A stretch of 63,110 nt of DNA, counting the filler, from Pelomyxa schiedti (taxonomy: Eukaryota; Protista; Evosea), in assembly GCA_020536535.1 (NCBI GenBank). It is 5 parts of 5 records of this genome, joined end to end, with 100 filler letters (N's around TTAATTAATTAA, not from the genome) between each part and the next. Parts side by side here need not be neighbours in the genome. Positions count along the whole stretch, not along the records: positions 1 to 23,087 come from JAHLWZ010001061.1; 4 more parts are not named here. One strand, 5' to 3'. This document shows positions 491-18,280 of this stretch, one piece after another. The translations under genes were made by a program, and so were the position numbers. Each line of letters starts with the position of its first letter. Within the stretch, counting starts at the first letter, position 1. The notes under the pieces are model-generated. The model was not told the origin of the DNA, did no database searches, and saw only the letters and a program-made list of their open reading frames with translations.

Positions 491-2935
491 TCACAGAGCC
501 ACATTCTCAATGAGGAAGACGCGGAACTCTGAGTCTGCGCCTGAGCTGTCGGGTGCGTCAACAACGATGAGCTGGTTTGTTGATGGAATCCAGGAAGTCA
601 ACCTCACATACTTGCCAAATGTTGGGAGTGTGTTTCTGTAAGTGCCATCATAAACACCAGTGGTGGTGTCAAACACCCCGTCGATCTCCCCGCTGTCGTA
701 TGCCTTGCCAAAGTAGAACCTCCCACACACAACAAATGCAAAGCCAGTCTTCATCTTGATGCGAGGGACAGTCCACGTCTGCAAGATTGTGAGGGAGTCA
801 GGGTCCACCCTCGTGATGTGTATGTTGCCGTTGTTGGGTGGTGCGTGGACCACGTACAGCACACCCCCTGCATCAACATACCAGCAAATGTCTGTGTATC
901 CGTTCCAGGTCCACGGTGACTCGCCAGAGTGACCGGCGTTTGGGAGTGGTGCAGTTGCTACTGTTGACCCGTCGCTCACACGCACCTTGGTCATTGTGGC
1001 TGCATTGGCTGGGGTGCAGTACACGTGGCCGTTGTGCACAGCCTGGTATGTGCCACCGGGGTGGTTGGGCACGTCCTTGACTGTGAATTGCCTTGGGTTG
1101 GTGTTGTTGATGAAGCTGGTCATGCTTTCGAACTCCGTCAGCTGTGAAGTGTAGTAGTCACTGCCCCAGTACACTTTTCCGGTTGTGTTGTCAACAAACA
1201 GCTTCTGTGCCTGACGGGGCGTGGTCGAGGTCACCATCGAGCCAAGTTGGTTGAGTTCCCTCGTTGCCGCTTTGGGAACAAGAGAACCTGATGTTGAATT
1301 GTGAACAAGGCGACCAAGTGATGATGAAATTGTTCCACAAACGGCAGTTGAATCACATTCAAATCTCACCTGTTCGCGTTTTTTTTTGTGTCATTTCACT
1401 TTTTTTTTTTTTTTTTGGATGCGGAAAAGAGAGAGAGATACCTTCAATTCATTTGGTGCCAGAGAGTCATTCTGGGCACCTGAATCGCAAAGCTTTTTGA
1501 CACGAGAAGTGAGAGTGTCATTGACAGCCACGAGTTGGAGGTCAGTGAACCTCGTTGTTGCCTGTTGCGCATATTCTTGTGCTTCTTGTGCATCCTTCAT
1601 CTTGTTGTCACATCCTTCAATGTGTTCTTGGAATATCTTGAAGGGGTAACGCCGCATTGTCAGTGTGTGTGATTGGTGCGACAGAAGACATGCCTTTTTT
1701 GATGTTTCGGTGATTGTCTTCAGTTCCGAGAGCAGCTGTGCCTCCTTGGCATTGACAACTGCAACAATCTTGGCAAATTCAGTTCGTATCTCAGCCTCAA
1801 CGTTCTCAGAAAGTTCATCTGCGTTTTTGCAGCATCCCTTTGGTTTTTTTTTTTGTTGTCGTTGAATGGGACGGAAATGAGAGAACACACACGATTGCAG
1901 TGTGTTTCGAAAGTGAAAGCTTCTCCAAGCGCAATGATAACTTGGAGCACAGTGAGGCAATGTTCTCCTTGAACTTGGAGCTCAGGTCAGAGGAAAACAC
2001 AAAGTCGTGGTTCTTGTGGTCAATCAATCTGATATTGTTTACGGAGTTAGGAAAAACCCAAGGACGCAACAGGCCCGAAATCAGACAAAAGAAAAAGGAA
2101 CACACACGTGCAGTCACGGCAAATCAGTGACTTGTCAGTGTTGCAGTACAACCGCAGTTCCTCATGTGGATGCTTGGAACAAAGTGCTGGTTTGGGTGCC
2201 GCGGGTGTGACGCTCGTCTGTGTCCTGATTTGATCCACAGTCACAACCTGCATTCCCAAGTGTGTGAGAGTGTGAACTGGTTGGCTGGTGGGAAGCGTGG
2301 GTGGCGAGGGAGATAGATATAAAATAAACACAGCAGCGCTACATTGTGGGAGGCGGTCTTCCTCGCACGTGAGTGGTGTGCCTTGTCGTCGTTGCACAGG
2401 AACACCCCGCACGTTGGGCACCACCACGGCACGTCGTGTGATCCGCATTCCACGCACTCGGGAGGCGGCGCGGCCGTCGTCGTCGTCGTCGTGGTGGTGG
2501 TGGTCCCTGGTTGTTTGTGTGTCCCGCCCTCAGCAACAAGTGGAGCCAGGTCCAACAGGTGGCGCTTCCAAAGGTCCACTGGGAACCCCCCTTGCGGAAT
2601 TGCGGCCTGTCGACAGGTTGTGGTGTGTTTTTTTGTGACTGTTGGTTTATTTTTCGTAAAGTAAAGACACGCAGAGGGACCTGGAATTGGCACACAGGGC
2701 ACGTCAGTGACGACGATGTGGCGGAGTTGGGCGCGGAGGGGAGCACCCCTCGCGAACACCTGGTGACGCACTCGAGGCACAAACTGTGCAAACACGGCAG
2801 CAGCCTGGGGCGTCGTGCGTGGGGGTGATGGAAGAACTTTTAAAATTTCGGAACGGGAGTTGTTCACCTTGGGTCACGGAGGAACGAGGAGCAACACGGG
2901 CACGTTATTTGTGCGGTCACTTCCTTCTTGTCCAT
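491..2935 (-). CDS. TRIM-like protein copy A: RING + B-box + B-box + coiled coil + C-terminal olfactomedin-like domain (multi-exon)
   Basis: ATG at 2935 (MDKKEVTAQITCPCC...PRLLPCLHSLCLEC...CPVC, C3HC4 RING). B-box CVECGSHDVPWWCPTCGVFLCNDDKAHH; B-box CSKHPHEELRLYCNTDKSLICRDC..DHKNH; helical region. Last exon (491-1369) has OLF motifs GTYQAVHNG, LPNAG, W.W.GYTDI, GNIHITRVDPDSL...QTW, AFVVCG. Confidence 0.85.
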
Positions 2936-3022
2936 TGATGAAAGCTTCAAGAATTTTTTTTCCTTGTGGAAAGGTGTGTCACTCCTCTTCTGATCACCAC
3001 AAGAAAAAAAAAACCACCCGAA
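2936..3022. promoter_or_regulatory. 87-bp divergent intergenic region, probable shared bidirectional promoter of the TRIM-OLF pair
   Basis: Only 87 bp separate the two outward-facing ATGs. Confidence 0.55.
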
Positions 3023-5396
3023 ATGAACAAGAAGGAAGTGATCTACCAAATAACGTGCCCATGTTGCTTGTCGTTCCTCCGTGACCCAAGGTGCCATCAT
3101 GGGATTCAAAAAAACTCCGTTCTCACACCCAACCATCAGGCTTCTGCCGTGTTTGCACACTTTGTGCCTCGAATGCATCCCTCGATGTTCGCGAAGCACC
3201 TCGACTGGTTCTCCGTTGCTCGCATACGCCGCGGAATGCCCTGTGTGTCACTCTCAGGTGTACGTTTCTTTCACTCCCACACTCACCCATTAGAGGACTA
3301 ACAACAACCGAAACCCGAAACACAACATAACTTTTCGACAGGCAGTCGCACCACCAGGGGGGTTCCCTGTGGACGAGTGGAAGAGAAGCATGTTGGCCTC
3401 GGTTCCACATGCTGTTTTTGGGAGTGGATCACACCAACCAGGCACCACGGCGACTGCGCCAGAATGCGGAGATTGCGGGGCACGCGAAGCCCAGTGGTGG
3501 TGCACAACGTGTAGCGCGTTTTTGTGCAACGATGACAAGGCACACCACTCACGTGCGAGGAAGACCGCCTCCCACAATGTAGCGCTGTGTTTATTTTATA
3601 TCTAACTCTCGCCACCAACCAACCAGCTCACTCACATACACGTCTAATGCAGGTTGTGACTGTGGCTCAACTCAGAACACAGACGAGTGTCACACCCGCG
3701 GCACCCAAACCAGCACTTTGTTCCAAGCATCCACATGAGGAACTGCGGTTGTACTGCAACACTGACAAGTCACTGATTTGCCGTGACTGCACGTGTGTGT
3801 TCCTTTTTCTGGTTTGGGAACCTGCTGTGCCCTTGGGTTGTTGGCTAACAACCCAAACAAACACAATTAGATTGATTGACCACAAGAACCACGACATTGT
3901 GTTTTCCTCTGACCTGAGCTCCAAGTTCAAGGAGAACATCGCCTCACTGTGCTCCAAGTTATCACTGCGCTTGGAGAAGCTTTCACTTTCGAAACACACT
4001 GCAATTGTGTGTATTTTCTCTCATTTCCGTCCCATTCAACGACAACAAAAAAAAAAACCAAAGGGATGCTGCAAAAACGTAGACGAAGTTTCAGAGAACG
4101 CTGAGGCGGAGATACGAACTGAATTTGCCAAGATTGTTGCAGTTGTCAATGCCAAGGAGGCTCAAATGCTCTCGGAACTTAAAAAAATCACCGAAACTGC
4201 GAAAAAGGCACGAACTTGTCTGTTGCACCAATCACACACACTGACAATGTGTTCACCCCCTCAAGATATTCCAAGAACACATTGAAGGATGTGACAACAA
4301 GATGAAGGATGCACAAGAGGCACAAGAATACGCACAACAGGCAACAACGAGGTTCACTGACCTCCAACTCGTGGCTGTCAATGACACTCTCACTTCTCGT
4401 GTCAAAAAGCTTTGCGATTCAGGTGCCCAGAATGACTCTCTGGCACCAAATGAATTGAAGGTATCTCTCTCTCTTTTCCGCATCCAAAAAAAAAAAAAAA
4501 AAGTGAAATGACACAAAAAAAAACGCGAACAGGTGAGATTTGAATGTGATTCAACTGCCGTTTGTGGAACAATTTCATCATCACTTGGTCGCCTTGTTCA
4601 CAATTCAACATCAGGTTCTCTTGTTCCCAAAGCGGCAACGAGGGAACTCAAACAACTTGGCTCGATGGTCCACTCGATCACACCCCGTCCTGGGGTGAGG
4701 TTATTTGTTGACAACTCAACTGGGAAAGTGTACTGGGATGGTGCATACCACCGTCGACAACTGACAGAGTTTGCGAACATGACCAGCTTCATCAACAACA
4801 CCAACCCAAGACAGTTCATACTCAAGGACGTGCCCAACCACCCCGGTGGCACATACCAGGCAGTGCACAACGGCCACGTGTACTGCACCCCAGCCAATGC
4901 AGCCACAATGACCAAGGTGCGTGTGAGTGACGGGTCAACAGTAGCAACTGCACCACTCCCAAACGCCGGTCACTCTGGCAAATCAACGTGGAGCTGGGGT
5001 GGAGGCACAGACATTTGCTGGTATGTTGATGCAGGGGGTGTGCTGTACGTGGTCCACGCACCACCCAACGAAGGCAACATACACATCACGAGGGTGGACC
5101 CTGACTCCCTCGCCATCTTGCAGACGTGGACTGTCCCTCGCATCAAGGCACGGACAGGATATGCATTTGTTGTGTGTGGGAAGTTCTACTTTGGAAAGTC
5201 GCACAACAGCAACGAAATCGACGGGGTGTTTGACACCACAACTGGTGATTATGATGACACTTACAGAAACACACTCCCGACATGCGGCATGCGTGTGGCT
5301 CTTACTTCGTGGATTCCATCAACAAACCAGCTCCTCGTCATCGAAGCTCCTGACGTATCGTTCCGCGTTTTCCTCTTCGACAATGTGGCTCTGTGA
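3023..5396 (+). CDS. TRIM-like protein copy B: RING + B-box + B-box + coiled coil + C-terminal olfactomedin-like domain (multi-exon)
   Basis: ATG at 3023 (MNKKEVIYQITCPCC), GT-AG intron 3091-3139, then LLPCLHTLCLEC...CPVC, two B-boxes, coiled coil and OLF exon 4533-5396. Inverted paralog of copy A. Confidence 0.85.
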
Positions 5397-5607
5397 GAGG
5401 AAGATAAAGAAAATTTTTTGTTTGGCAACGTCCACCTCGTGAGATTTTACGGTGGAGGTGTGGCTACCCAAGGGGACGTCATGCATTTGGCGTGGGAATC
5501 CAACTACTACTTGGCGCATGACCCACCTGACAGGACCAAGATGTGGGGACAGACCTAACCATCAGTTTGAGTTTCTAGGAAACCCGCAGCGTGGCTCCTC
5601 TTTTTTA

Positions 5608-7862
5608 ATGCTGAAAGAGCCGTGCCAGGATACCTCTTCCACCGTAACCGCGTCGTTGTCGAGCAAACAACAGGAGGCCGGCAGGGTCCTCATGATCTCG
5701 CGCGTCGCGTGGGAGTACGCGGTGCAGCCAGTCCTCGCGGCCTCGTACAGATCCCTCGAGCACGGGGACGTGGTGTGGGCGTTCGGCGCGGCGTCGGCCC
5801 TGTTCCCCCTCGTCGCCCTCGTGTGCCGCGGCGTCGCCGCCGCCCCCGTGGTGTTCAAGCACCTCGGCGACGAGGAGCCGCAGGGGCACTCCCGCCACTG
5901 GGACGTGAGGTGCGCCGCGCAGGCCGGCAGCCCCGCCTGCATCTCGTGGATCCTGAGGCACAAGCCCACGAGGAACAACACGAGGGAGTGCCTGAGCGTG
6001 CTGTGGGGGCTCTGCGGCGGCGGACACCTCGAGATGGCGCGGCAGCTCGTCGACGGCGACTGCGCGGCGGCGGGGACTGATGAGCGCCGGGCGGGCGGCC
6101 TTGGCTGCGATTATGGGAGGAGTGATGTGAGGTGGGTGAAGGAATCGGGGCTGGCGTGGCCCGTGGGTGAGAATGACCTGAGGGACGAGGTAAGAGCCAT
6201 TGATATCACTCCGGATGGGAGCGAGGATGAGACCTTGTTGTCAGAGGTGTGCAGAGGGGGGCACCTTGAGACAGCCAAGTGGGTTGTTGAGAGGTTCCGG
6301 CTGAGGGAGAGCTGGGAGCTTGCTGCTCCGTTTATGGCTGCTGTTCGTGCTGGGAAGCTCGAGGTGGCGAGGTGGTTGTGTGGGTTATGTGGGGTCGTTT
6401 GGGCTGTGAACACACTGGGGCTGAATTACCCAGTTAAGTTCTACTTTGAGGGAAACCTGGAGATGGTCCAGTGGCTGGTGGAGGTCTTCCCTGGAAGCTG
6501 GAGTTTGGAAAAACCTGAAAAGTGTTACTCCCCTGTGGGACTTGCTGCTGGTGTCATGTGTAACAAGAAGATTACCCTGAAGGAACGCGTTGAGGCCTTC
6601 CAGTGGCTGAGGTCACACTTCAGCTTTGACCTACAAGAAGTCCAGACGGTTGCCACAGGTACACGAGGGGTGGAGTCACTCATGTGGTTGATAGAGACCC
6701 ACGGTGTGCAGCCGCCAGTGAGCATGTGGTGGTGGAGGGAGGTGGAGGGTGTAGAATCTGTTGAGTGGCTTGTAAAGCACCTCCCAATGTCAGTTACAGC
6801 TGCCAATTTTCTTGAAGTTTGTGGAAACATCAAGGATGACTTGCACTGCGTGAGAGTGCTGCTGTCAGAGGTGGTCAATCTCACTCCAACCGACCATGAA
6901 GAAGCACTTATAGAAGCACTGTCCAATGGCAACATCAAAATCGCCAACTGGCTGGAAGCAACCTTCCATATCATGGAGAAAAATGTCAATGTCGCTGCTC
7001 CCAAGGCGAATGCCACTCTAATTTCTCTGTGCAAGAACTACAGCAACTACTGTGACACAAGGGCCATCAGGTGGTTCTTTGAGCACGTATCTGCAGATAA
7101 AATAGATGAGAGTTCCCTGGCAAGAGCAGTACGCCACACACGGTTCTCTGTCTTGTCATTCTTGCTTGAGTTGTTCCACTTTTCACCTACCAGTAAGTCG
7201 CGGCAGGATCAGCGCAAGTGGAGTAAAGTACTGCTGGGAGCAGTGGTCACTGGGTGGACTCCAATTTCAAGTCAGCTTATTTCATGTAGGGCTGTTGACA
7301 GTAGTCATGCTATAAACTGTGTGATTCAGTCTTGTCATTCCTGCTTCATCTCCAGCAAAGCTATGAAAAGGGTAATACACGAGTATCACCTGGAGAACCA
7401 GCCAGAATACATCAAATACAACAACAATGTTCTTATAGAATTGATCAATGCAAATAACACAAGGTGTGCAGAGTGGCTGATCCACAACTTTGAGGTCACC
7501 CTGGAAGAGGTATGCCTTTTCTTTGTACAATAAACGCAACTCTAACAAAAGCTAAAAAAAAAAAAAAAAAAAAAAAAACACAGCTGGGACATCCAAGCTG
7601 CGCTAACAAGGAGATTTCATTTCCGATGTGGAAGATGCTGCTGAGGGTGTTCCCAGAGATAACAGCTGACTTTATACGTGATCACCTGTGGTGGGCACTA
7701 ATGTCCTCACCCGTCCACATTGAGTTTGCAATGAAGGCAGTTGGGATCACACAGGCCCATGTAATGCACCGTCTGACTAATGAAATAGAACAAGTGCTGC
7801 CCAAGGAAACACTGTTATGGATTCTGAAGCTTAAGATGTCACGTCCTCATCACAAATGGTGA
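5608..7862 (+). CDS. Degenerate ankyrin-like repeat protein of an expanded family
   Basis: Long ORF 5452-7533 with repeated GGHLEMARQLV / GGHLETAKWVV / AGKLEVARWL / GNLEMVQWLV units. An intron near 7510-7583 joins the last exon ending at 7862. Start ATG 5608 is tentative. Confidence 0.7.
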
Positions 7863-9388: not shown

Positions 9389-10408
9389 TCAGTCATAGAG
9401 TCTCACCATCGATCTACCAACCTTGGATTTGCCAAAGTCAAGATACTCACCAGTGGTGTCAATGTACAATGAGTACCCGAGGCTGTGCTGCACCCAAGTA
9501 TTGCCCTCGCTGTCAGAACACTTCCTGATCACAGATATAATTTGACCAGGTGCCAGATGCCCCACCACGGTGCCAGATATACAAGGTACAGCCCGGACCC
9601 TCAGTTGTGTGTTTGGAATGGTCACTTTGTATCTCCTTGTTGCCGGCTTTGTTGGGGATTGATTATTGGCATGGCGCAGAGAAGCGGATAGAGCGGCAAC
9701 TTGATTGCTCAAGTCTGTGACTTGCCTGTGCAGATGTACAATCCTGACAAAAGGGCATGTTGCTTCGTGTGTCAATACGTCGGCCCTGGGGCCTGAAAAT
9801 GGGCACCCTTGAGGTTTCCCAGGGCAAGTTTGGTTGCAAGTGGTGTGTATGTGGTTAAGAATGTCACCCCGGCTTACAGTGATCCCGCACTGTGGGCATT
9901 TAATCACAAGTGAGTTCAAGGATGCAAGAAGTGACCTCATCTGTAGCAGTCTGTCAGAGCATTACTTCTATTTTACCAATACAATTTTTGTTGCTTGAAC
10001 ATAATACCCCACCAACATAACACCTGGTTCTACAATAATGCTTATATAATAAGCATATATCTAACATCACATTAAAAAAAAAAATATACACTATGCAAAG
10101 AATAGATGGGGGGAAAAAAAAAACACTGAACTAAACAATGTTTGGCGGGCTTCGAATTTACTCACCATCACAGGTGCTCTTGTGGTTGCGTCCCAGGCCT
10201 TTCTACACATTGGGCACGCGGGCAGGCTCGCGACGCAGGAACGGCAGAAGGTGTTGCCGCACTGGTCGTCGCGGTGCTCGACGGGGTTTACGAGGGGCAT
10301 CAGGCACACTGGGCACAGCAGCGTGTCGCTCACCGAGCTCGGGTATTGCGCGTGGCTCAGAACCACCTCCAGCTCGTTGTTCGGACCATCAGCCGACCCT
10401 CGTTGCAT
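9389..10408 (-). CDS. RING + TRAF-type zinc finger + coiled coil + SH3b-like domain E3 ligase
   Basis: CPVCLMPLVNPVEH...CGNTFCRSCV....CPMC RING; CPQC...HIHTTC...CPGKPQGCPF....HEATCPF zf-TRAF; heptad segment; LRVRAVPCISGTVVGHLAPGQIISVI....GNTWVQH SH3b-like domain. Confidence 0.75.
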
Positions 10409-11334: not shown

Positions 11335-12937
11335 TTAGAAAATTCGGGCATAGTCAGGGTGTTTTCGGCCGATAGTCTCCAAGATGTTGTTTACAAGGTA
11401 GCATGCACGTTCAATGTGGTGATCCCAGAGTTCTTGTTCACTACCGGCTGTACAATTGTGAGGGGTTTTAATATTGGAGGAAGGCAAACTTGTTTCAAAG
11501 ATGATCAATCTGGAGATCTGGTCAATTGAGCCACCCATTCGTGCTTCACCAATCATCTTAGCAGCAAACCTCTCTGCCAATTCAGGTGAGACACCAAGAA
11601 GCAGGCCGAGTTCGTCAAACGATATATTGTTGTACAAACGGGATGCGGATAGAAGGTTATGTTCAAGGAATGCACTGAGGGAAAGAATGCAAGTTAGACC
11701 CCAACAAGTGAAATATCGTGAAGAATACTGTTGAACCACAGTGAGACCTTCGGACTTGATTCCCACTTGATGCGGTGGCAGTCCAGCAGAGAATCTTGCA
11801 GCCTCATCGGGTTTCAAAACATTTTCCAAATACCTGCGTCAGGTAAATGGGAAATCTAAAAAAGAGGAATCCACATTTTCTTGAGAATTCCATAGTGATC
11901 AAGGTATTGGGTCCGTTCATCTTTGTACAGAGTGGCCAACATACGAGACCGCTGAGGTCCAGCTTCTGCCAAAATGGCGGAGTTCACTGCTTGTTGCAGG
12001 GCCATTCGACGTTCCTTCATTACACGGTTAACATACACTCGCCGACTTGAGTTAAAGCATACTTCATCTGGACCATTCTGTGAGATATCGTAATAATGAA
12101 TGGCTGCCTTGATAAATTGTTGGTTCAAATCAAGTACTTGTGCAAAACATCTCTGATTTGTATATTATCAGTACTCAATGTCAGATTAAAAAAGGTGCTA
12201 AAAGGAACCTTGTATTGATGCACAAGGACAGGTTTGGGGCACTTGTGAACAGTAGCTGAAGCCCGTGTAATGTACGTGAGGGCAACGTCAGCCTTCCCTG
12301 TCTGCAGAATTAAAGTAGCAATCTTCACAAACAACTCAGTCTTAGCTTCAGCATCCACCATCCTGGGAAATGAAAGCAAATTAAAATCACACCTAACTGA
12401 CTCTCTGGAACCTTGTGCTGGAGTCTACTGGGATAGCCATAAGTTGTTCAGCAGCCTCCTGCGCACGGCCTTCTGCTTCGTACAAGCGTGCCAAATTTCC
12501 TCGAAGGTTGACAATCTACAGAAAAGATAAGTATCGTATAACAAAGCAAGAACTTACATGCTCCTCGAATGCTACTGTGCGTGGTTGCAGCTTGCTAATA
12601 GCGTGTAGTGCCATTTGCACCATCATTTGTTGGGGGAGAGATTGAACTTTTGCAACGAAATCAGAGAGCAAGGGCCGAGACACAACTAATGGGGTTTTTT
12701 CCTCAGACACTAGGATTTGAGAGGGAAAACCAAATGAGCATTGAACGTTGAGATACGGTATTGACAATCAAATTTCTATGAAGAAAATAGGGGCCTACTG
12801 TGGTCAATGAATTTCATGATGTCAGGCGCAGAGGCCCGGGAGATGGCATCGTTTAGGAGAGTTGTGTACTCCTTGGACTTCGCCTTATGGTCACTCAATC
12901 CCGCTATTTGCACGAGTTTCCTCCCGAAATCAGCCAT
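11335..12937 (-). CDS. COPS4: COP9 signalosome subunit 4
   Basis: LQPRTVAFEE, LAEAGPQRSRMLATLYKDER, EHNLLSASRLYNNISFDELGLLL...GSIDQI (PCI domain). Multi-exon. Confidence 0.93.
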
Positions 12938-13199
12938 GGTGACTTTTTTGTTTGTGCGGGTTAGTTGTTGCTCGGAACGCGTTCAAGTTTTCCCAATAAC
13001 AAACGCAGTTACGGTGTAGTATGGTATCATATTTACGTGGTGGTGTTTGTGCGGAAGTTGTTAGCCTAAACGTACTGCTTGCTTGTCGTCCACAGGTTTT
13101 TTTTTCTTTTACTTTTTTGGATCTTTCTAAACACTGGCGGTCGGTTTCAGATTTGTTGCTATTGGTTCAATCAATTAGAAAAAAAAAAAGAAGGGCGTG

Positions 13200-14432
13200 A
13201 TGGCGGCAGCGGTTGGGAAGAGAGACGCTGCAGTTGGCCACGCGTTGGAATTTTTGAGCGGGATTGATCTGTGTTGCGTTGGGCTTGTGTGCAGATCTTG
13301 GCATTCGTTGGCTGCATCTGATGGTCTGTGGGCCAAGTCTGTGAGTTTCTAGTTTTTCGTTTCTTGGTGGTTTTTTTTCCCCCCACTTGACACATTAATA
13401 TGTCACACAAGATGCTGTTGTTGGCACAAATCGTTAGCAAATTTACCCTTGTAGGTTAGTGCATGGGTTGGGCTTGGTGTGTTGTGCAGAGGGAAGAGAG
13501 TGCGTGTGTGGATCTAAAGGAGGATTTAAGCGGATCTGGGTACAGTACATGTGGAAGATTCACAAGAAAGCACGGACTCGAACTGAGCGTATCGTTCCTT
13601 TTTCAAGTTTCTTTTTCCCTTTTTTTTTCATTCACTGTTCTTTCAAAAGCTAGTGACGACATAGTGATACATATCCACTTGCTCCTCACAGGCCCAAAGC
13701 GATCTGGAATAACTTGCTTCCAGCGAAGATTTGAGGCAATTCAACCCCCAGAATAAATTTCCACTTACTGTGTGAAGGATGACATATATGATCCTGACCC
13801 AATAACAACTATAGGTGTTAGTTTCAAATTAGTAACACGCGAAGTTGGTCAATATCGTGTCCGATTGCATGTACAACGAGAGAAACTGAATACATGTAAC
13901 AGTTACAGATATTGGACATACCAGCCCCGTTTTTAAGAGGACCTTGTTTCATTCGTGCCGACGTACTCCTTTTGTGCTGTAGGGTTTCTTTCGTTAATTC
14001 GCTTCTAACTCAAAGAAAGTTGATTTGAATGATCCCAAATCGTTTACCGAGGCATCTGAACGAATTCTTCCTCACATCATGGCAAACGGCATCCATCCAT
14101 TGAGGGTTGTACTAATCGGTTGCAAGTCTGATCTAGGTAAGCCCTTCCTTGCCAATTTTATCTGACATACGATACTAGTTCATAATGTCTCTAAAGAGGC
14201 CATAAATGCACTCTGCAAGTCACATGCAAACCTCACTTATTATGAGACTTCTGCGAGGCTTTCCACTGGCATTGAGCAACCTGTCTTGGATTCGTGTGCC
14301 AAGGTACGGCAACCACAACAAATAACGCCTTCTAACCTATAGAAGATACTGGAACCAATAAAGTCTCCAAAAGCAATAACCAGACTTCAGAAGCAACCAC
14401 CCACGCCTCCCTCCGCATGTTCTTTGTTGTGA
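13200..14432 (+). CDS. F-box + Rab/Ras-like pseudo-GTPase with C-terminal CAAX (CSLL)
   Basis: Exon 1: LEFLSGIDLCCVGLVCRSWHSLAASDGLW (F-box). Then GPKRSGIT (G1), TTIGVSF (G2), LDIPA (G3), IGCKSD (G4), ETSAR (G5), ending PPSACSLL*. Confidence 0.75.
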
Positions 14433-15051: not shown

Positions 15052-18000
15052 TCAGTTTCGTTCCTCAGAGGCAAGTGACTTGGCACAGGTCGTAACCACA
15101 TAGGGGAAGTCCGGACGCCGTTTCAGGCACTCCACAATCACCTCTGAACTCCACACTGGGTCATACAATGGAGGACCCACAGGCTGGCCCAACGTGCAGC
15201 ACTCCACAGTGCCTCCAACCAACACAGAGCAGCGCGATGTAACGACCATGTTGTACACGCAGTCGACGTCGCCGCGCACGGCCGGCTGCTGTCCCATAAG
15301 CTCGCCGGGCAGGCACCACTTGCCCTTGTGGCAGACGGGATGGTCCGGTGTGATTTCCACTATCCCACGGCCGGCTTCGGAGACGGTGATGAGAAGGTGT
15401 GATTGGGCCTCTTGGAGTCTGCATCTGTAATGTTGTTTGAGCAAAACTAGAAGAAAAAAGGGTGTGATACTTGCCTCCAAATGCATTCGACTTCTTGGAA
15501 GCTTCCATCGGCACATTCAACTTTGGTCCCAACTTTCAGGTCACACATTTTCACTGGTGTGTTGTTGTTCTGCACACTGAATGTTGCATTTGGACCAAAG
15601 CACACTTCCTTGGAGAAAAACGATGACACCTTACAAATACGAAATTAGAAGTACACACGGACTATTTCAGGGTACATACAGGTGCCGGAACAATAGGCGG
15701 TTTGTGGGAATCGCATGTGAATGTAGAATTCTTCCACAAAACACGAGGACTGGGTGTTAGAACCCATTCACCACGGTAAGCCTTGGTCCACAGTGGTTCA
15801 CTTCTGGCAAGCTCATGAAATAGTCTGCAGGTTTGTGTAAGCTGAATCAACGCAACAAAGTTTAGGTGGGAGAAAATCTCTGGTTTTGAATTAGCAGTCA
15901 AAGTTGGTGAATCAAAACAGCATATTACCAAGCCACGTATCTCTTGGCAGTACATCAGTTCCAGAGCAACCGAGGTCTAAGCCATAGCAATCACAAAGCA
16001 CATCATCGGGATTTGTTGTTCTCCTTTGTCCACCAAATCTTTTCCATTTTGGCTGTTAGATAGAGTTTATTCTTGTTTGAATAGGTACAGAAAAATGTGG
16101 CGGTTGTCATAGGACACCATTGAATGGAAATCTCGGGCAATAGGAGAATTTTCAACAGTGAGTTCCGTCCAGTACATACTGTTTTTTTACTGAAATGTGA
16201 GACAACTGTGGATTGATTCATGACAACACACCTATTTAGATCCAGTTGAAACAGTTTACTGTCAACGCAATTTTGTGGGCAGCTGAAAGAATATTAAATT
16301 GGCAGAGTAACGTAGAGGTAAGTATTACCCGAAAATGAACATGAAATCACGAACGACGCACGCAGAGTGGCCCCTAAGTGGAGGTGGTGATGCTCCTTTT
16401 TGACAAAGTTGCTGGCAGGCCTGGGAAAATGATACCCGACGTTAAAAACTCGTTTGTGAAGCCTGCATACTAACCGGCAGGTTCACAAGATCAAGCCTCC
16501 ACAGGTCATTCAACCAAGATCCGTTAGAGGCAATGCCCCCAAATCTGGATATGTGGGAAGTCGCACATTTATTTAGAGGTGACTAACATCAGCATCCCGT
16601 TTTTGTGTACTAGAGCGGTGTGATGGTAGCGGCTCGGTACGAAGTGGGGTTCTGTTCCATGTTCCTTTGGTCTATTTGAAAATAAAAGGAAAACCAGTAA
16701 ACTACAAAGAGGGTCCATTGCAGATCAGATAAAGATACTGAGTATAGCTCGTCCGAAGCTGTACTTGCTGTCGAGTTAAATCCCCCAAATAATATCATGG
16801 AACTGTTATAAGCAACAGCCGTGGAGCCAAATCTAGCTGATGGGGACGTAGGAGACTCAATGAACTTCACACTGAATCCTAATCTTGGGAGATTTCAGAA
16901 CTTTGTTGGAAATCCTCGTTCGGGAATTCAAACTTGGAGGAATCACAATTTCCAACTATAATTTTGTTGCTGTACATCGAGCTTCTTCCTCCTTTGAGTG
17001 ATTAGCACCGAGGAATACAGAAGTATGGGTACCAAATGCAAATAGGTGTCCACTATGGGCAACACAGCAAGCAAATATGGTACCACAAAACTCTGGAGAA
17101 AGAGGAACCGGAGGTAACCATTTTTGGGAGAGAATGTCAAAGCGCAAAATCTACTTTTCTCGTTACTTTGCTGGGAAGTTGGGTTGGAATTACTTCACAG
17201 TTCTGGGTCTCATGACGTGAATTACTTCCTCCAAAGACATACCTATTGATAGTGAAAAGAACTTTACACTCCGTGGTAGCGATACATGACATTTCGGAGT
17301 AAAACTGAAGAATGTCCGTATCTTGGGATTCCAGGATTCAAACTGGTCCATGCAAAGTTGGTGGTATGGTCGTGCCTCACAGGTTTCTTTGCAACGGGCG
17401 GCTCTGACTTGGAGAACCACGGAAAAGAAAACATTGAGGACTTGGCGTGTGGGCAAGATCGGCACTGAGCTCCCCGAGTGATCTCTTGGAGAACATCAAC
17501 AGCCCCAATATGTTTCAACGCACTACGGCGAAATAAATGTGTAAAAAAAAAAACTGGGTAAGAACCAACCTGGTGTGAAGGTAACCATATGCATTAATCT
17601 TTTTAGAAAGGGTAACGCCTTCCTCAAAGGACACAGGAGAGTCCCTGCTGGAATGTGGTCCTAGGAAAACCTCAGGCAAGGAAGGTGAGTTTCTTGACTA
17701 CCATAAAAAAGATCTGATTTCAGACCAACGAGGAGAAGTGGTGCCTAGTTAACTTTCAGAACTATGAGATTCATTCAGCTAAAGAGAACAAACAGACCAT
17801 TGGGGAGCTGCGTCGAATTTCAGGTAGCCAGTTTGTAGTGACATGGTCAAAGGATTCACGGTTCATTATTGAAAAGCAAACCACAAAGATGTCAGTTCCC
17901 GGATATGAAAGTGGCCGGAGTCGTGCATAGTCGTCGTATCCCATACTAAAGCAGTCTTTGAAAAAAAGAGAAGAGGAGCCCCTATGATTCTTACGTGTCC

Positions 18001-18280
18001 CATAGACCTACGCAAAACTTCGTCCCATCCACAGACACCATGGCACTGTACTGGGAGATATATATCTGAGTGCAATAAGAGGCATTTCTCTTTGCATACA
18101 TTATCGAACACAGTGGGATTGTAACCATCCGAAGGGAACGAATTGCAAGTCATTCTTCTTTCCTTTAGAACAAAAAAAATGGCACTGCCATTACACGATA
18201 ATTAAGGCAGTCTTCCCGACGCCGGGGTCCCCAACAAATACAGCCTTGATCCCATAACACATGTCATCGGGGTGATCCAT
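15052..18280 (-). CDS. Atypical Rho/Rac GTPase + Kelch repeats + F-box + Hint (Vint-type) domain fusion protein
   Basis: IKAVFVGDPGVGKT, YNPTVFDN, WDT..YDDYARLRPLSYPGTD, GLKSDL, SALK; PRYGHS..MYVFGG, ARFGS..MILFGG, LRGHS..FIFG kelch repeats; LPRD..EIFSHL...TCRLFHELARSEPLW F-box; CFGPNAT..DLKVG..ITPDHPV..VYNMVV..CCTLGQ Hint/Vint. Confidence 0.8.

Follow-up and report, generated by a model that had tools for sequence, protein, structure and literature searches.

Introduction

Can a protein of the tripartite motif (TRIM) family end in an olfactomedin (OLF) propeller, and what would such a protein do inside a single-celled host? The question is raised by two neighbouring genes, here called A and B, at positions 491 to 5,396 of a 63,110-nucleotide stretch of the Pelomyxa schiedti assembly GCA_020536535.1 (the window, filler between its joined parts included), for which an initial annotation, made from the sequence alone, had proposed a new TRIM subclass in a unicellular eukaryote, with the OLF propeller as recognition head. 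The host is indeed unicellular: P. schiedti is a giant anaerobic amoeba of the archamoebae, whose genome was obtained from whole-genome-amplified single cells (PMC8887013), and it harbours prokaryotic endosymbionts (PMC10579272). The TRIM survey of Marin 2012 reports only MATH-type, subfamily A TRIMs outside animals and does not list olfactomedin (PMC3503706), and the literature presents OLF proteins as belonging to multicellular organisms (PMC6719662). The annotation's remark that no known TRIM class ends in OLF holds for this survey and for the literature searched, in which, thin as the search was on subscription journals, TRIM-OLF, bacterial OLF, BTB-BACK-OLF and B-box-coiled-coil-OLF proteins were not found described. 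TRIM-OLF is a real and apparently undescribed variant of TRIM.

A Tripartite Motif Closed by an Olfactomedin Propeller

Genes A (minus strand) and B (plus strand) are head-to-head paralogs of eight exons each (Table 1). Both are as complete as first annotated, with frames open over 649 and 633 amino acids, zero internal stops and full zinc-ligand patterns for the C3HC4 RING, B-box1 and B-box2; carrying RING, two B-boxes and coiled coil in this order, they satisfy the structural definition of TRIM or RBCC (RING, B-box, coiled coil) proteins. Frames, motifs and hydropathy were checked on joined exon models, and homology was searched by single exon or GenBank protein. P0153, the GenBank model of gene A, matches the Pfam families zf-B_box (E 7e-11, at B-box2), zf-C3HC4 (E 6e-4) and OLF (E 1e-27). 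The zf-C3HC4 score lies just below the cut-off of 21 bits in gene A (20 bits) and above it in paralog P0001 (21.7), and all eight zinc ligands are invariant across full-length paralogs and animal TRIMs, while B-box1 of gene A is identified by its pattern, by a weak Pfam match and by a match to the tandem B-boxes of MID1. The N-terminal 375 residues are colinear with TRIM28 (E 3e-16) and TRIM3, and the RING with those of TRIM2, TRIM5 and TRIM34. AlphaFold2 models the gene A coiled coil as a hairpin, in which a helix of 111 residues leads into a return helix, with a predicted local distance difference test score (pLDDT) of about 90, and Foldseek matches this model to TRIM28, TRIM72 and TRIM5. 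No NHL or filamin domain was matched by Pfam at E<=0.1 in the TRIM-OLF proteins, nor was a MATH domain, so that they fall outside both the TRIM-NHL class VII (e.g., TRIM71) and the TRIM37-like subfamily A. In both A and B the N-terminus runs directly into the RING, and hydropathy reveals no signal-like or membrane segment (maximum 19-residue value 0.84 in A and 1.16 in B), in line with the signal peptide having been annotated as absent; a cytosolic location is predicted.

Exon 8 consists of a short linker and the complete OLF domain. Taken alone, it scores 96-100 bits for OLF (PF02191; cut-off 23.9 bits) and yields zero Pfam matches to NHL, Kelch or any other propeller family; its model (pLDDT 94) has OLF structures as all 50 of its 50 best Foldseek matches, and sequence matches include noelin, myocilin and latrophilin, with E down to 1e-22. 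An NHL, Kelch or other propeller as the C-terminal module, an alternative that the annotation had itself named, was therefore rejected. GenBank holds these proteins under the automatic name 'TRIM71', which is wrong for the C-terminus, since the propeller is OLF and not NHL. The calcium triad of myocilin (D380/N428/D478; PMC6719662) is replaced in the Pelomyxa OLF by C, F/Y and S; this is not diagnostic of location, because some extracellular OLFs also lack the calcium site (PMC6719662).

Transcripts and Gene Family

RNA evidence comes from single-cell RNA contigs, the runs of which represent one sample of one study. One 479-nt contig runs from exon 6 over a spliced GC-AG intron into exon 7 and, past a second splice, on into the OLF exon, of which it carries 195 nt of A type. 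The coiled coil and the OLF domain are thus one transcript, and separate transcription of the last exon, which the annotation had considered, is contradicted by this splice. Introns 3, 4 and 5 are spliced in further contigs, some of which show a few differences and may derive from alleles or close paralogs, and a B-type contig begins at exon 8, preceded by the final letters of exon 7. The continuity from RING to OLF is predicted from conserved splice sites, open frames and GenBank models.

The P. schiedti assembly (52.37 Mb, 5337 contigs) contains 23 Pfam OLF matches, every one at loci of the TRIM-OLF family. The count of family members that had been called for gives 14 copies in which coiled-coil exons are followed by an intact OLF exon, besides several broken, partial or decayed ones; both RING exons are present in 10 of the 14, three are cut by contig ends and one is without upstream exons. 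Exon order and phases are equal at no fewer than 10 loci on several contigs. The count covers OLF-bearing loci; besides these there are RING-only relatives (C2422, C1667, C1124 and C1348) and other Pelomyxa TRIMs. An intronless stand-alone OLF gene with a different N-terminal region (C867; L042 4269-5426, G000:C867) branches first, basal to the TRIM-OLF clade, and is a possible relic of the founder. P0003 (G000:C167, near a contig end) is a GenBank model in which a partial OLF is fused to DEP and RasGEF, probably a mis-joined model of an OLF fragment. The genome also holds at least 150 B-box loci (309 candidates) with varied tails, among them RING-like/B-box/coiled-coil genes ending in Sel1 repeats (RBCC-Sel1, e.g., L075 2802-4944); TRIM-OLF is therefore one subfamily within a large expansion, and the TRIM repertoire of Pelomyxa looks unexplored.

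Selection on One Face of the Propeller

Using the model, in which each blade has four strands and the calcium-site positions fix the inner strand, OLF residues were classed as strands, top loops or bottom loops. Variation among paralogs concentrates on the top face: mean entropy is 1.27 in top-face loops versus 0.51 and 0.54 in the other two classes, all propeller indels fall in top-face loops, and omega is 0.61 for the top, 0.25 for the bottom and 0.22 for strands. Comparison of M1a with M2a gives twice the log-likelihood difference (2dL) as 42 (p 7e-10), with 9.5% of sites at omega 2.7 and nine of the ten best sites on top; M8a against M8 gives 2dL 40 and places 20 of 23 sites on the top face (Fisher p 4e-7), with the same result on gap-free columns. 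Three OLF segments analysed with their own trees each carry the signal (sum 2dL 44), which limits the objection that recombination created it. In exons 3-7 (B-box and coiled coil) of 11 of these genes, no positive selection was detected (2dL 0). Between A and B, 27 changing and 6 silent codons separate the top faces, as against 15 and 17 elsewhere. The same pattern of positive selection on the C-terminal domain is known for the B30.2 of finTRIMs and TRIM5 (PMC2657112).

Origin of the Olfactomedin Domain

The initial annotation had taken OLF to be an extracellular domain of animal proteins, and in this respect it has to be corrected: OLF is not confined to animals, because it occurs in bacteria and other protists too, with which the Pelomyxa OLF shares a non-animal branch. 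A HMMER search of 1.84 billion representative sequences gave 281 matches, and our statements cover the 150 listed. After Pelomyxa itself, the closest among these are bacterial surface-type proteins with 43-44% identity (one named Myxococcales), behind which protist and animal OLFs rank; a search of 301 genomes from the phylum of those bacteria found OLF in 10. In the tree, animal OLFs form one clade, and Pelomyxa OLFs form their own clade (100/100) inside a separate non-animal clade (100/100) with Myxococcales-type surface proteins, PEP-CTERM-type bacterial proteins, BTB-BACK-OLF and B-box-coiled-coil-OLF. A clade of Pelomyxa with animal OLFs is rejected by the approximately unbiased (AU) test (p-AU 0.0003), and with it an animal origin or animal contamination. 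A single clade of all protist OLFs is absent from the tree, yet not rejected (p-AU 0.32). The tree does not establish a specific, recent myxobacterial transfer, since branching within the non-animal clade is poorly supported. Among the matches listed, RING, B-box and OLF occur together only in Pelomyxa, and no listed Atlas cluster combines them; scans of genome and metagenome contig collections returned only the locus itself and one spurious opposite-strand match.

Several relatives deserve mention in their own right. BTB-BACK-OLF proteins (P0020 from the cercozoan Mataza sp., P0019 at L065 40-1725, P0017 and P0038; clade support 99/96) have OLF in the Kelch slot of the cullin-3 adaptor architecture. 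Genes for B-box(-B-box)-coiled-coil-OLF proteins without RING were found at L044 (116-2032 and 2215-4083, each also present as a separate 2.1-kb contig), L045, L066-L069 and L071 (313-1629). These contigs are gene-sized, bear C4A4 telomere caps and use TAA/TAG stops, and we take them to be ciliate, armophorean-like nanochromosomes. Among bacterial OLFs (L047-L063, P0028, P0035, P0055, P0016), one group is animal-like and keeps the calcium-site residues, and a second, nearer to protist OLFs, is without them; P0016 combines OLF with PKD and may be archaeal.

Proposed Function and Alternative Explanations

We think it probable that TRIM-OLF proteins are cytosolic TRIM E3 ligases that dimerise through their coiled coil, bind foreign, fast-changing targets by the variable top face of OLF and ubiquitinate them. 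By analogy with other TRIMs, the coiled coil would form an antiparallel dimer with an OLF head on each subunit, a cytosolic target would be bound at the top face of the propeller, the B-boxes might help dimers to cluster on a multivalent target, and the RING would recruit a ubiquitin-conjugating enzyme (E2), so that the ubiquitinated target could be removed by proteasome or autophagy. Since the family has been duplicated, has partly decayed and has diversified at the presumed binding face, specificity probably differs from paralog to paralog. As targets, viruses or prokaryotes (ingested or endosymbiotic), or proteins of either, are most likely, and the predicted role is probably in defence or symbiont control. 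The annotation's view of OLF as a recognition head has gained support from the selection on one propeller face and from the head position that OLF occupies on BTB-BACK and B-box-coiled-coil scaffolds of unrelated protists. A wider and more tentative proposal, to which we give somewhat less than even weight, is that protists have an unrecognised intracellular OLF branch, kin to bacterial surface OLFs, that provides ubiquitin-ligase scaffolds with their recognition head, the scaffold being TRIM in Pelomyxa, B-box-coiled-coil in the ciliates and BTB-BACK in a cercozoan, and that in Pelomyxa it may have given rise to a family of diversifying immune receptors, comparable in a protist to TRIM5 and finTRIMs, watching viruses or prokaryotic endosymbionts.

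Several observations weigh against a ligase-based defence role. In most RINGs a linchpin arginine and a first hydrophobic residue contact the E2; here the position after the last Cys is Gln or His, and a Cys occupies the first hydrophobic position, because of which replacements the Pelomyxa RING may be weak or inactive. Of the single transcript that RNA had been expected to confirm, the coiled coil-OLF splice was seen, but splicing of the RING introns 1 and 2 was not seen in the single-cell RNA contigs, one of which retains intron 2 yet has intron 3 spliced. These atypical E2-contact residues, the retained intron and the ciliate B-box-coiled-coil-OLF proteins that have no RING would all suit non-catalytic scaffolds or RNA- or glycan-binding adaptors akin to TRIM28 or Brat/TRIM71, in which the RBCC oligomerises, OLF binds a ligand and ubiquitin transfer is absent or secondary; this reading is nevertheless improbable, given that every full-length paralog has the RING zinc ligands unchanged and that 10 loci retain both RING exons. 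As to selection, the codon tests come from our own GY94 site-model script, with branch lengths scaled and not optimised singly, gene conversion can inflate site tests, and the average top-face omega remains below 1.

Positive selection among paralogs is also compatible with divergence toward different host substrates, and the proteins might be ligases for the amoeba's own proteins, with no part in defence or symbiosis. Expansion of putative ligases with varied tails is genome-wide, as the B-box loci illustrate, and Kelch and NHL propellers, which as C-terminal heads fill the same slot, mostly bind host substrates. We regard this explanation as rather unlikely, since diversification has been recent and repeated, the differences even between close pairs are mostly amino-acid replacements in the top face and many copies have decayed, a combination more in keeping with an arms race than with stable housekeeping. 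An artefact, be it a gene-model fusion, an amplification chimera or animal or bacterial contamination, is very improbable: although the source cells were whole-genome amplified (PMC8887013) and no single-cell RNA contig reaches from RING to OLF, the gene structure recurs across loci, RNA is spliced into the OLF exon, the short GT-AG and GC-AG introns are typical of the P. schiedti genome, the OLFs form a clade of their own and the neighbouring genes are eukaryotic. A cytosolic ligase directed at foreign targets is the reading that we prefer.

Organization of the Locus

Introns of A and B are GT-AG, except for the GC-AG intron 6; P. schiedti genes have 7.4 introns each, and GC-AG borders occur in 1.6% of the introns (PMC8887013). 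An apparent frameshift of gene B near 4255 was rejected, as the RNA joint places it within this intron. The head-to-head junction is bridged by DNA contigs (two runs, one sample) and the two arms differ by about 10%, for which reasons an amplification chimera was rejected for the inverted pair. The spacer between the start codons is predicted to act as a shared bidirectional promoter. Exons 5-7 of A and B have 90-98% DNA identity, and intron 7 (1370-1441 in A, 4461-4532 in B) is 100% identical, compared with only about 76% for introns 1-2, which suggests gene conversion across the pair.

Table 1. Features of the TRIM-OLF gene pair (positions in the window)
Feature	Position	Strand	Description	Evidence
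Gene A	491..2935	-	TRIM-OLF, 649 aa	Open frame; GenBank model P0153 of equal length; RNA joints
Gene A exons	2935-2868, 2804-2681, 2606-2343, 2247-2108, 2028-1893, 1837-1694, 1636-1442, 1369-491	-	ATG 2935, stop ends 491	
Gene A C3HC4 RING	2690..2902	-	aa 12-61, interrupted by intron 1	
Gene A B-box1	2346..2456	-	aa 115-151	
Gene A B-box2	2007..2181	-	aa 175-206, interrupted by intron 4	RNA joint 2028/2108
Gene A coiled-coil hairpin	1472..1994	-	Helix aa 211-321, return helix 324-347; exons 5-7	AlphaFold2, Foldseek
Gene A intron 6	1637..1693	-	GC-AG, 57 nt	Skipped in RNA contig
Gene A intron 7	1370..1441	-	Coiled coil to OLF exon	Spanned by RNA contig X4-26, 195 nt on shorter side
Gene A OLF propeller	494..1219	-	Five-bladed, entirely within exon 8	Pfam OLF E 1.8e-28
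Spacer between start codons	2936..3022	.	87 bp	Sequence; bridging DNA contigs
Gene B	3023..5396	+	TRIM-OLF, 633 aa	Open frame; RNA contig on exon 8
Gene B exons	3023-3090, 3140-3257, 3342-3578, 3653-3792, 3871-4006, 4064-4207, 4266-4460, 4533-5396	+	ATG 3023, stop ends 5396	
Gene B C3HC4 RING	3056..3248	+	aa 12-59, interrupted by intron 1	
Gene B B-box1	3465..3575	+	aa 104-140	
Gene B B-box2	3719..3892	+	aa 164-195, interrupted by intron 4	Pfam zf-B_box E 5.9e-7
Gene B coiled coil	3905..4430	+	Exons 5-7	Identity to gene A exons; gene A model
Gene B intron 6	4208..4265	+	GC-AG, 58 nt	Equivalent intron spliced in RNA; one RNA piece ends at 4207
Gene B OLF propeller	4683..5393	+	Top-face loops variable, positively selected	Pfam, model, codon tests

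An ankyrin-repeat open reading frame (5452-7533, plus strand, single exon, 693 amino acids) begins 55 bp past gene B. Further along, on the minus strand, lie a TRAF-like gene (9389-10408), in which a RING, a TRAF zinc finger and a short coiled coil precede, where MATH would be expected, a C-terminal domain resembling SH3b (weak Pfam match to SH3_3, E 0.09), a gene with a PCI domain that is similar to COP9 subunit 4 (11335-13400) and an F-box/Kelch gene (15052-18150). The proximity of the last two, both of the ubiquitin system, is probably due to chance.

Comparison with Known Systems

With TRIM-OLF the TRIM family gains a further class of C-terminus, and an animal-like RBCC with two B-boxes is placed in an amoeba, a setting from which only MATH-type TRIMs had been reported. 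It also moves the olfactomedin domain, whose function has been described as largely elusive and which is linked to glaucoma through myocilin, beyond its animal extracellular setting, into bacteria and, by prediction, the protist cytosol. On the propeller, a candidate ligand-binding face is marked by the selected sites, and the proteins are concrete candidates, open to testing, for a role in cell-autonomous immunity or in the control of symbionts in an endosymbiont-bearing amoeba.

With the TRIM-NHL/TRIM45 group (Marin subfamily C, class VII/X) and TIF1/TRIM28, the Pelomyxa proteins have in common the RING, two B-boxes and long coiled-coil hairpin; the best RBCC sequence matches outside Pelomyxa are TRIM45 and sponge TRIM-NHL (22-29% identity), and the best structural ones TRIM28 and TRIM3. 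TRIM-NHL proteins likewise close with a beta-propeller, but one of six NHL repeats instead of the five-bladed OLF, and, unlike this group, TRIM-OLF has no filamin domain and an amoebozoan host. TRIM5alpha and the teleost finTRIMs resemble the Pelomyxa family in their lineage-specific expansion, conserved RBCC and selection on the C-terminal binding surface (PMC2657112). Their head is PRY-SPRY/B30.2 and not OLF, and antiviral function has been shown for TRIM5, whereas for the Pelomyxa proteins a role in defence is a proposal.

The animal olfactomedins (noelin, myocilin, latrophilin, gliomedin) have the Pelomyxa fold (TM 0.8-0.85), and noelin and myocilin likewise carry OLF after a coiled coil. 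They differ in being secreted or extracellular, while hydropathy shows neither a signal peptide nor a membrane segment in TRIM-OLF, and the calcium triad, which only some animal members possess, is replaced in Pelomyxa. None of the bacterial, BTB-BACK-OLF or ciliate proteins found in the non-animal clade has a RING. The BTB-BACK-OLF proteins would act as cullin-3 adaptors, if BTB-BACK-Kelch proteins are a guide, and in both these and the B-box-coiled-coil-OLF proteins of protists, OLF is carried on scaffolds of ubiquitin-ligase type without signal peptides, as it is in Pelomyxa.

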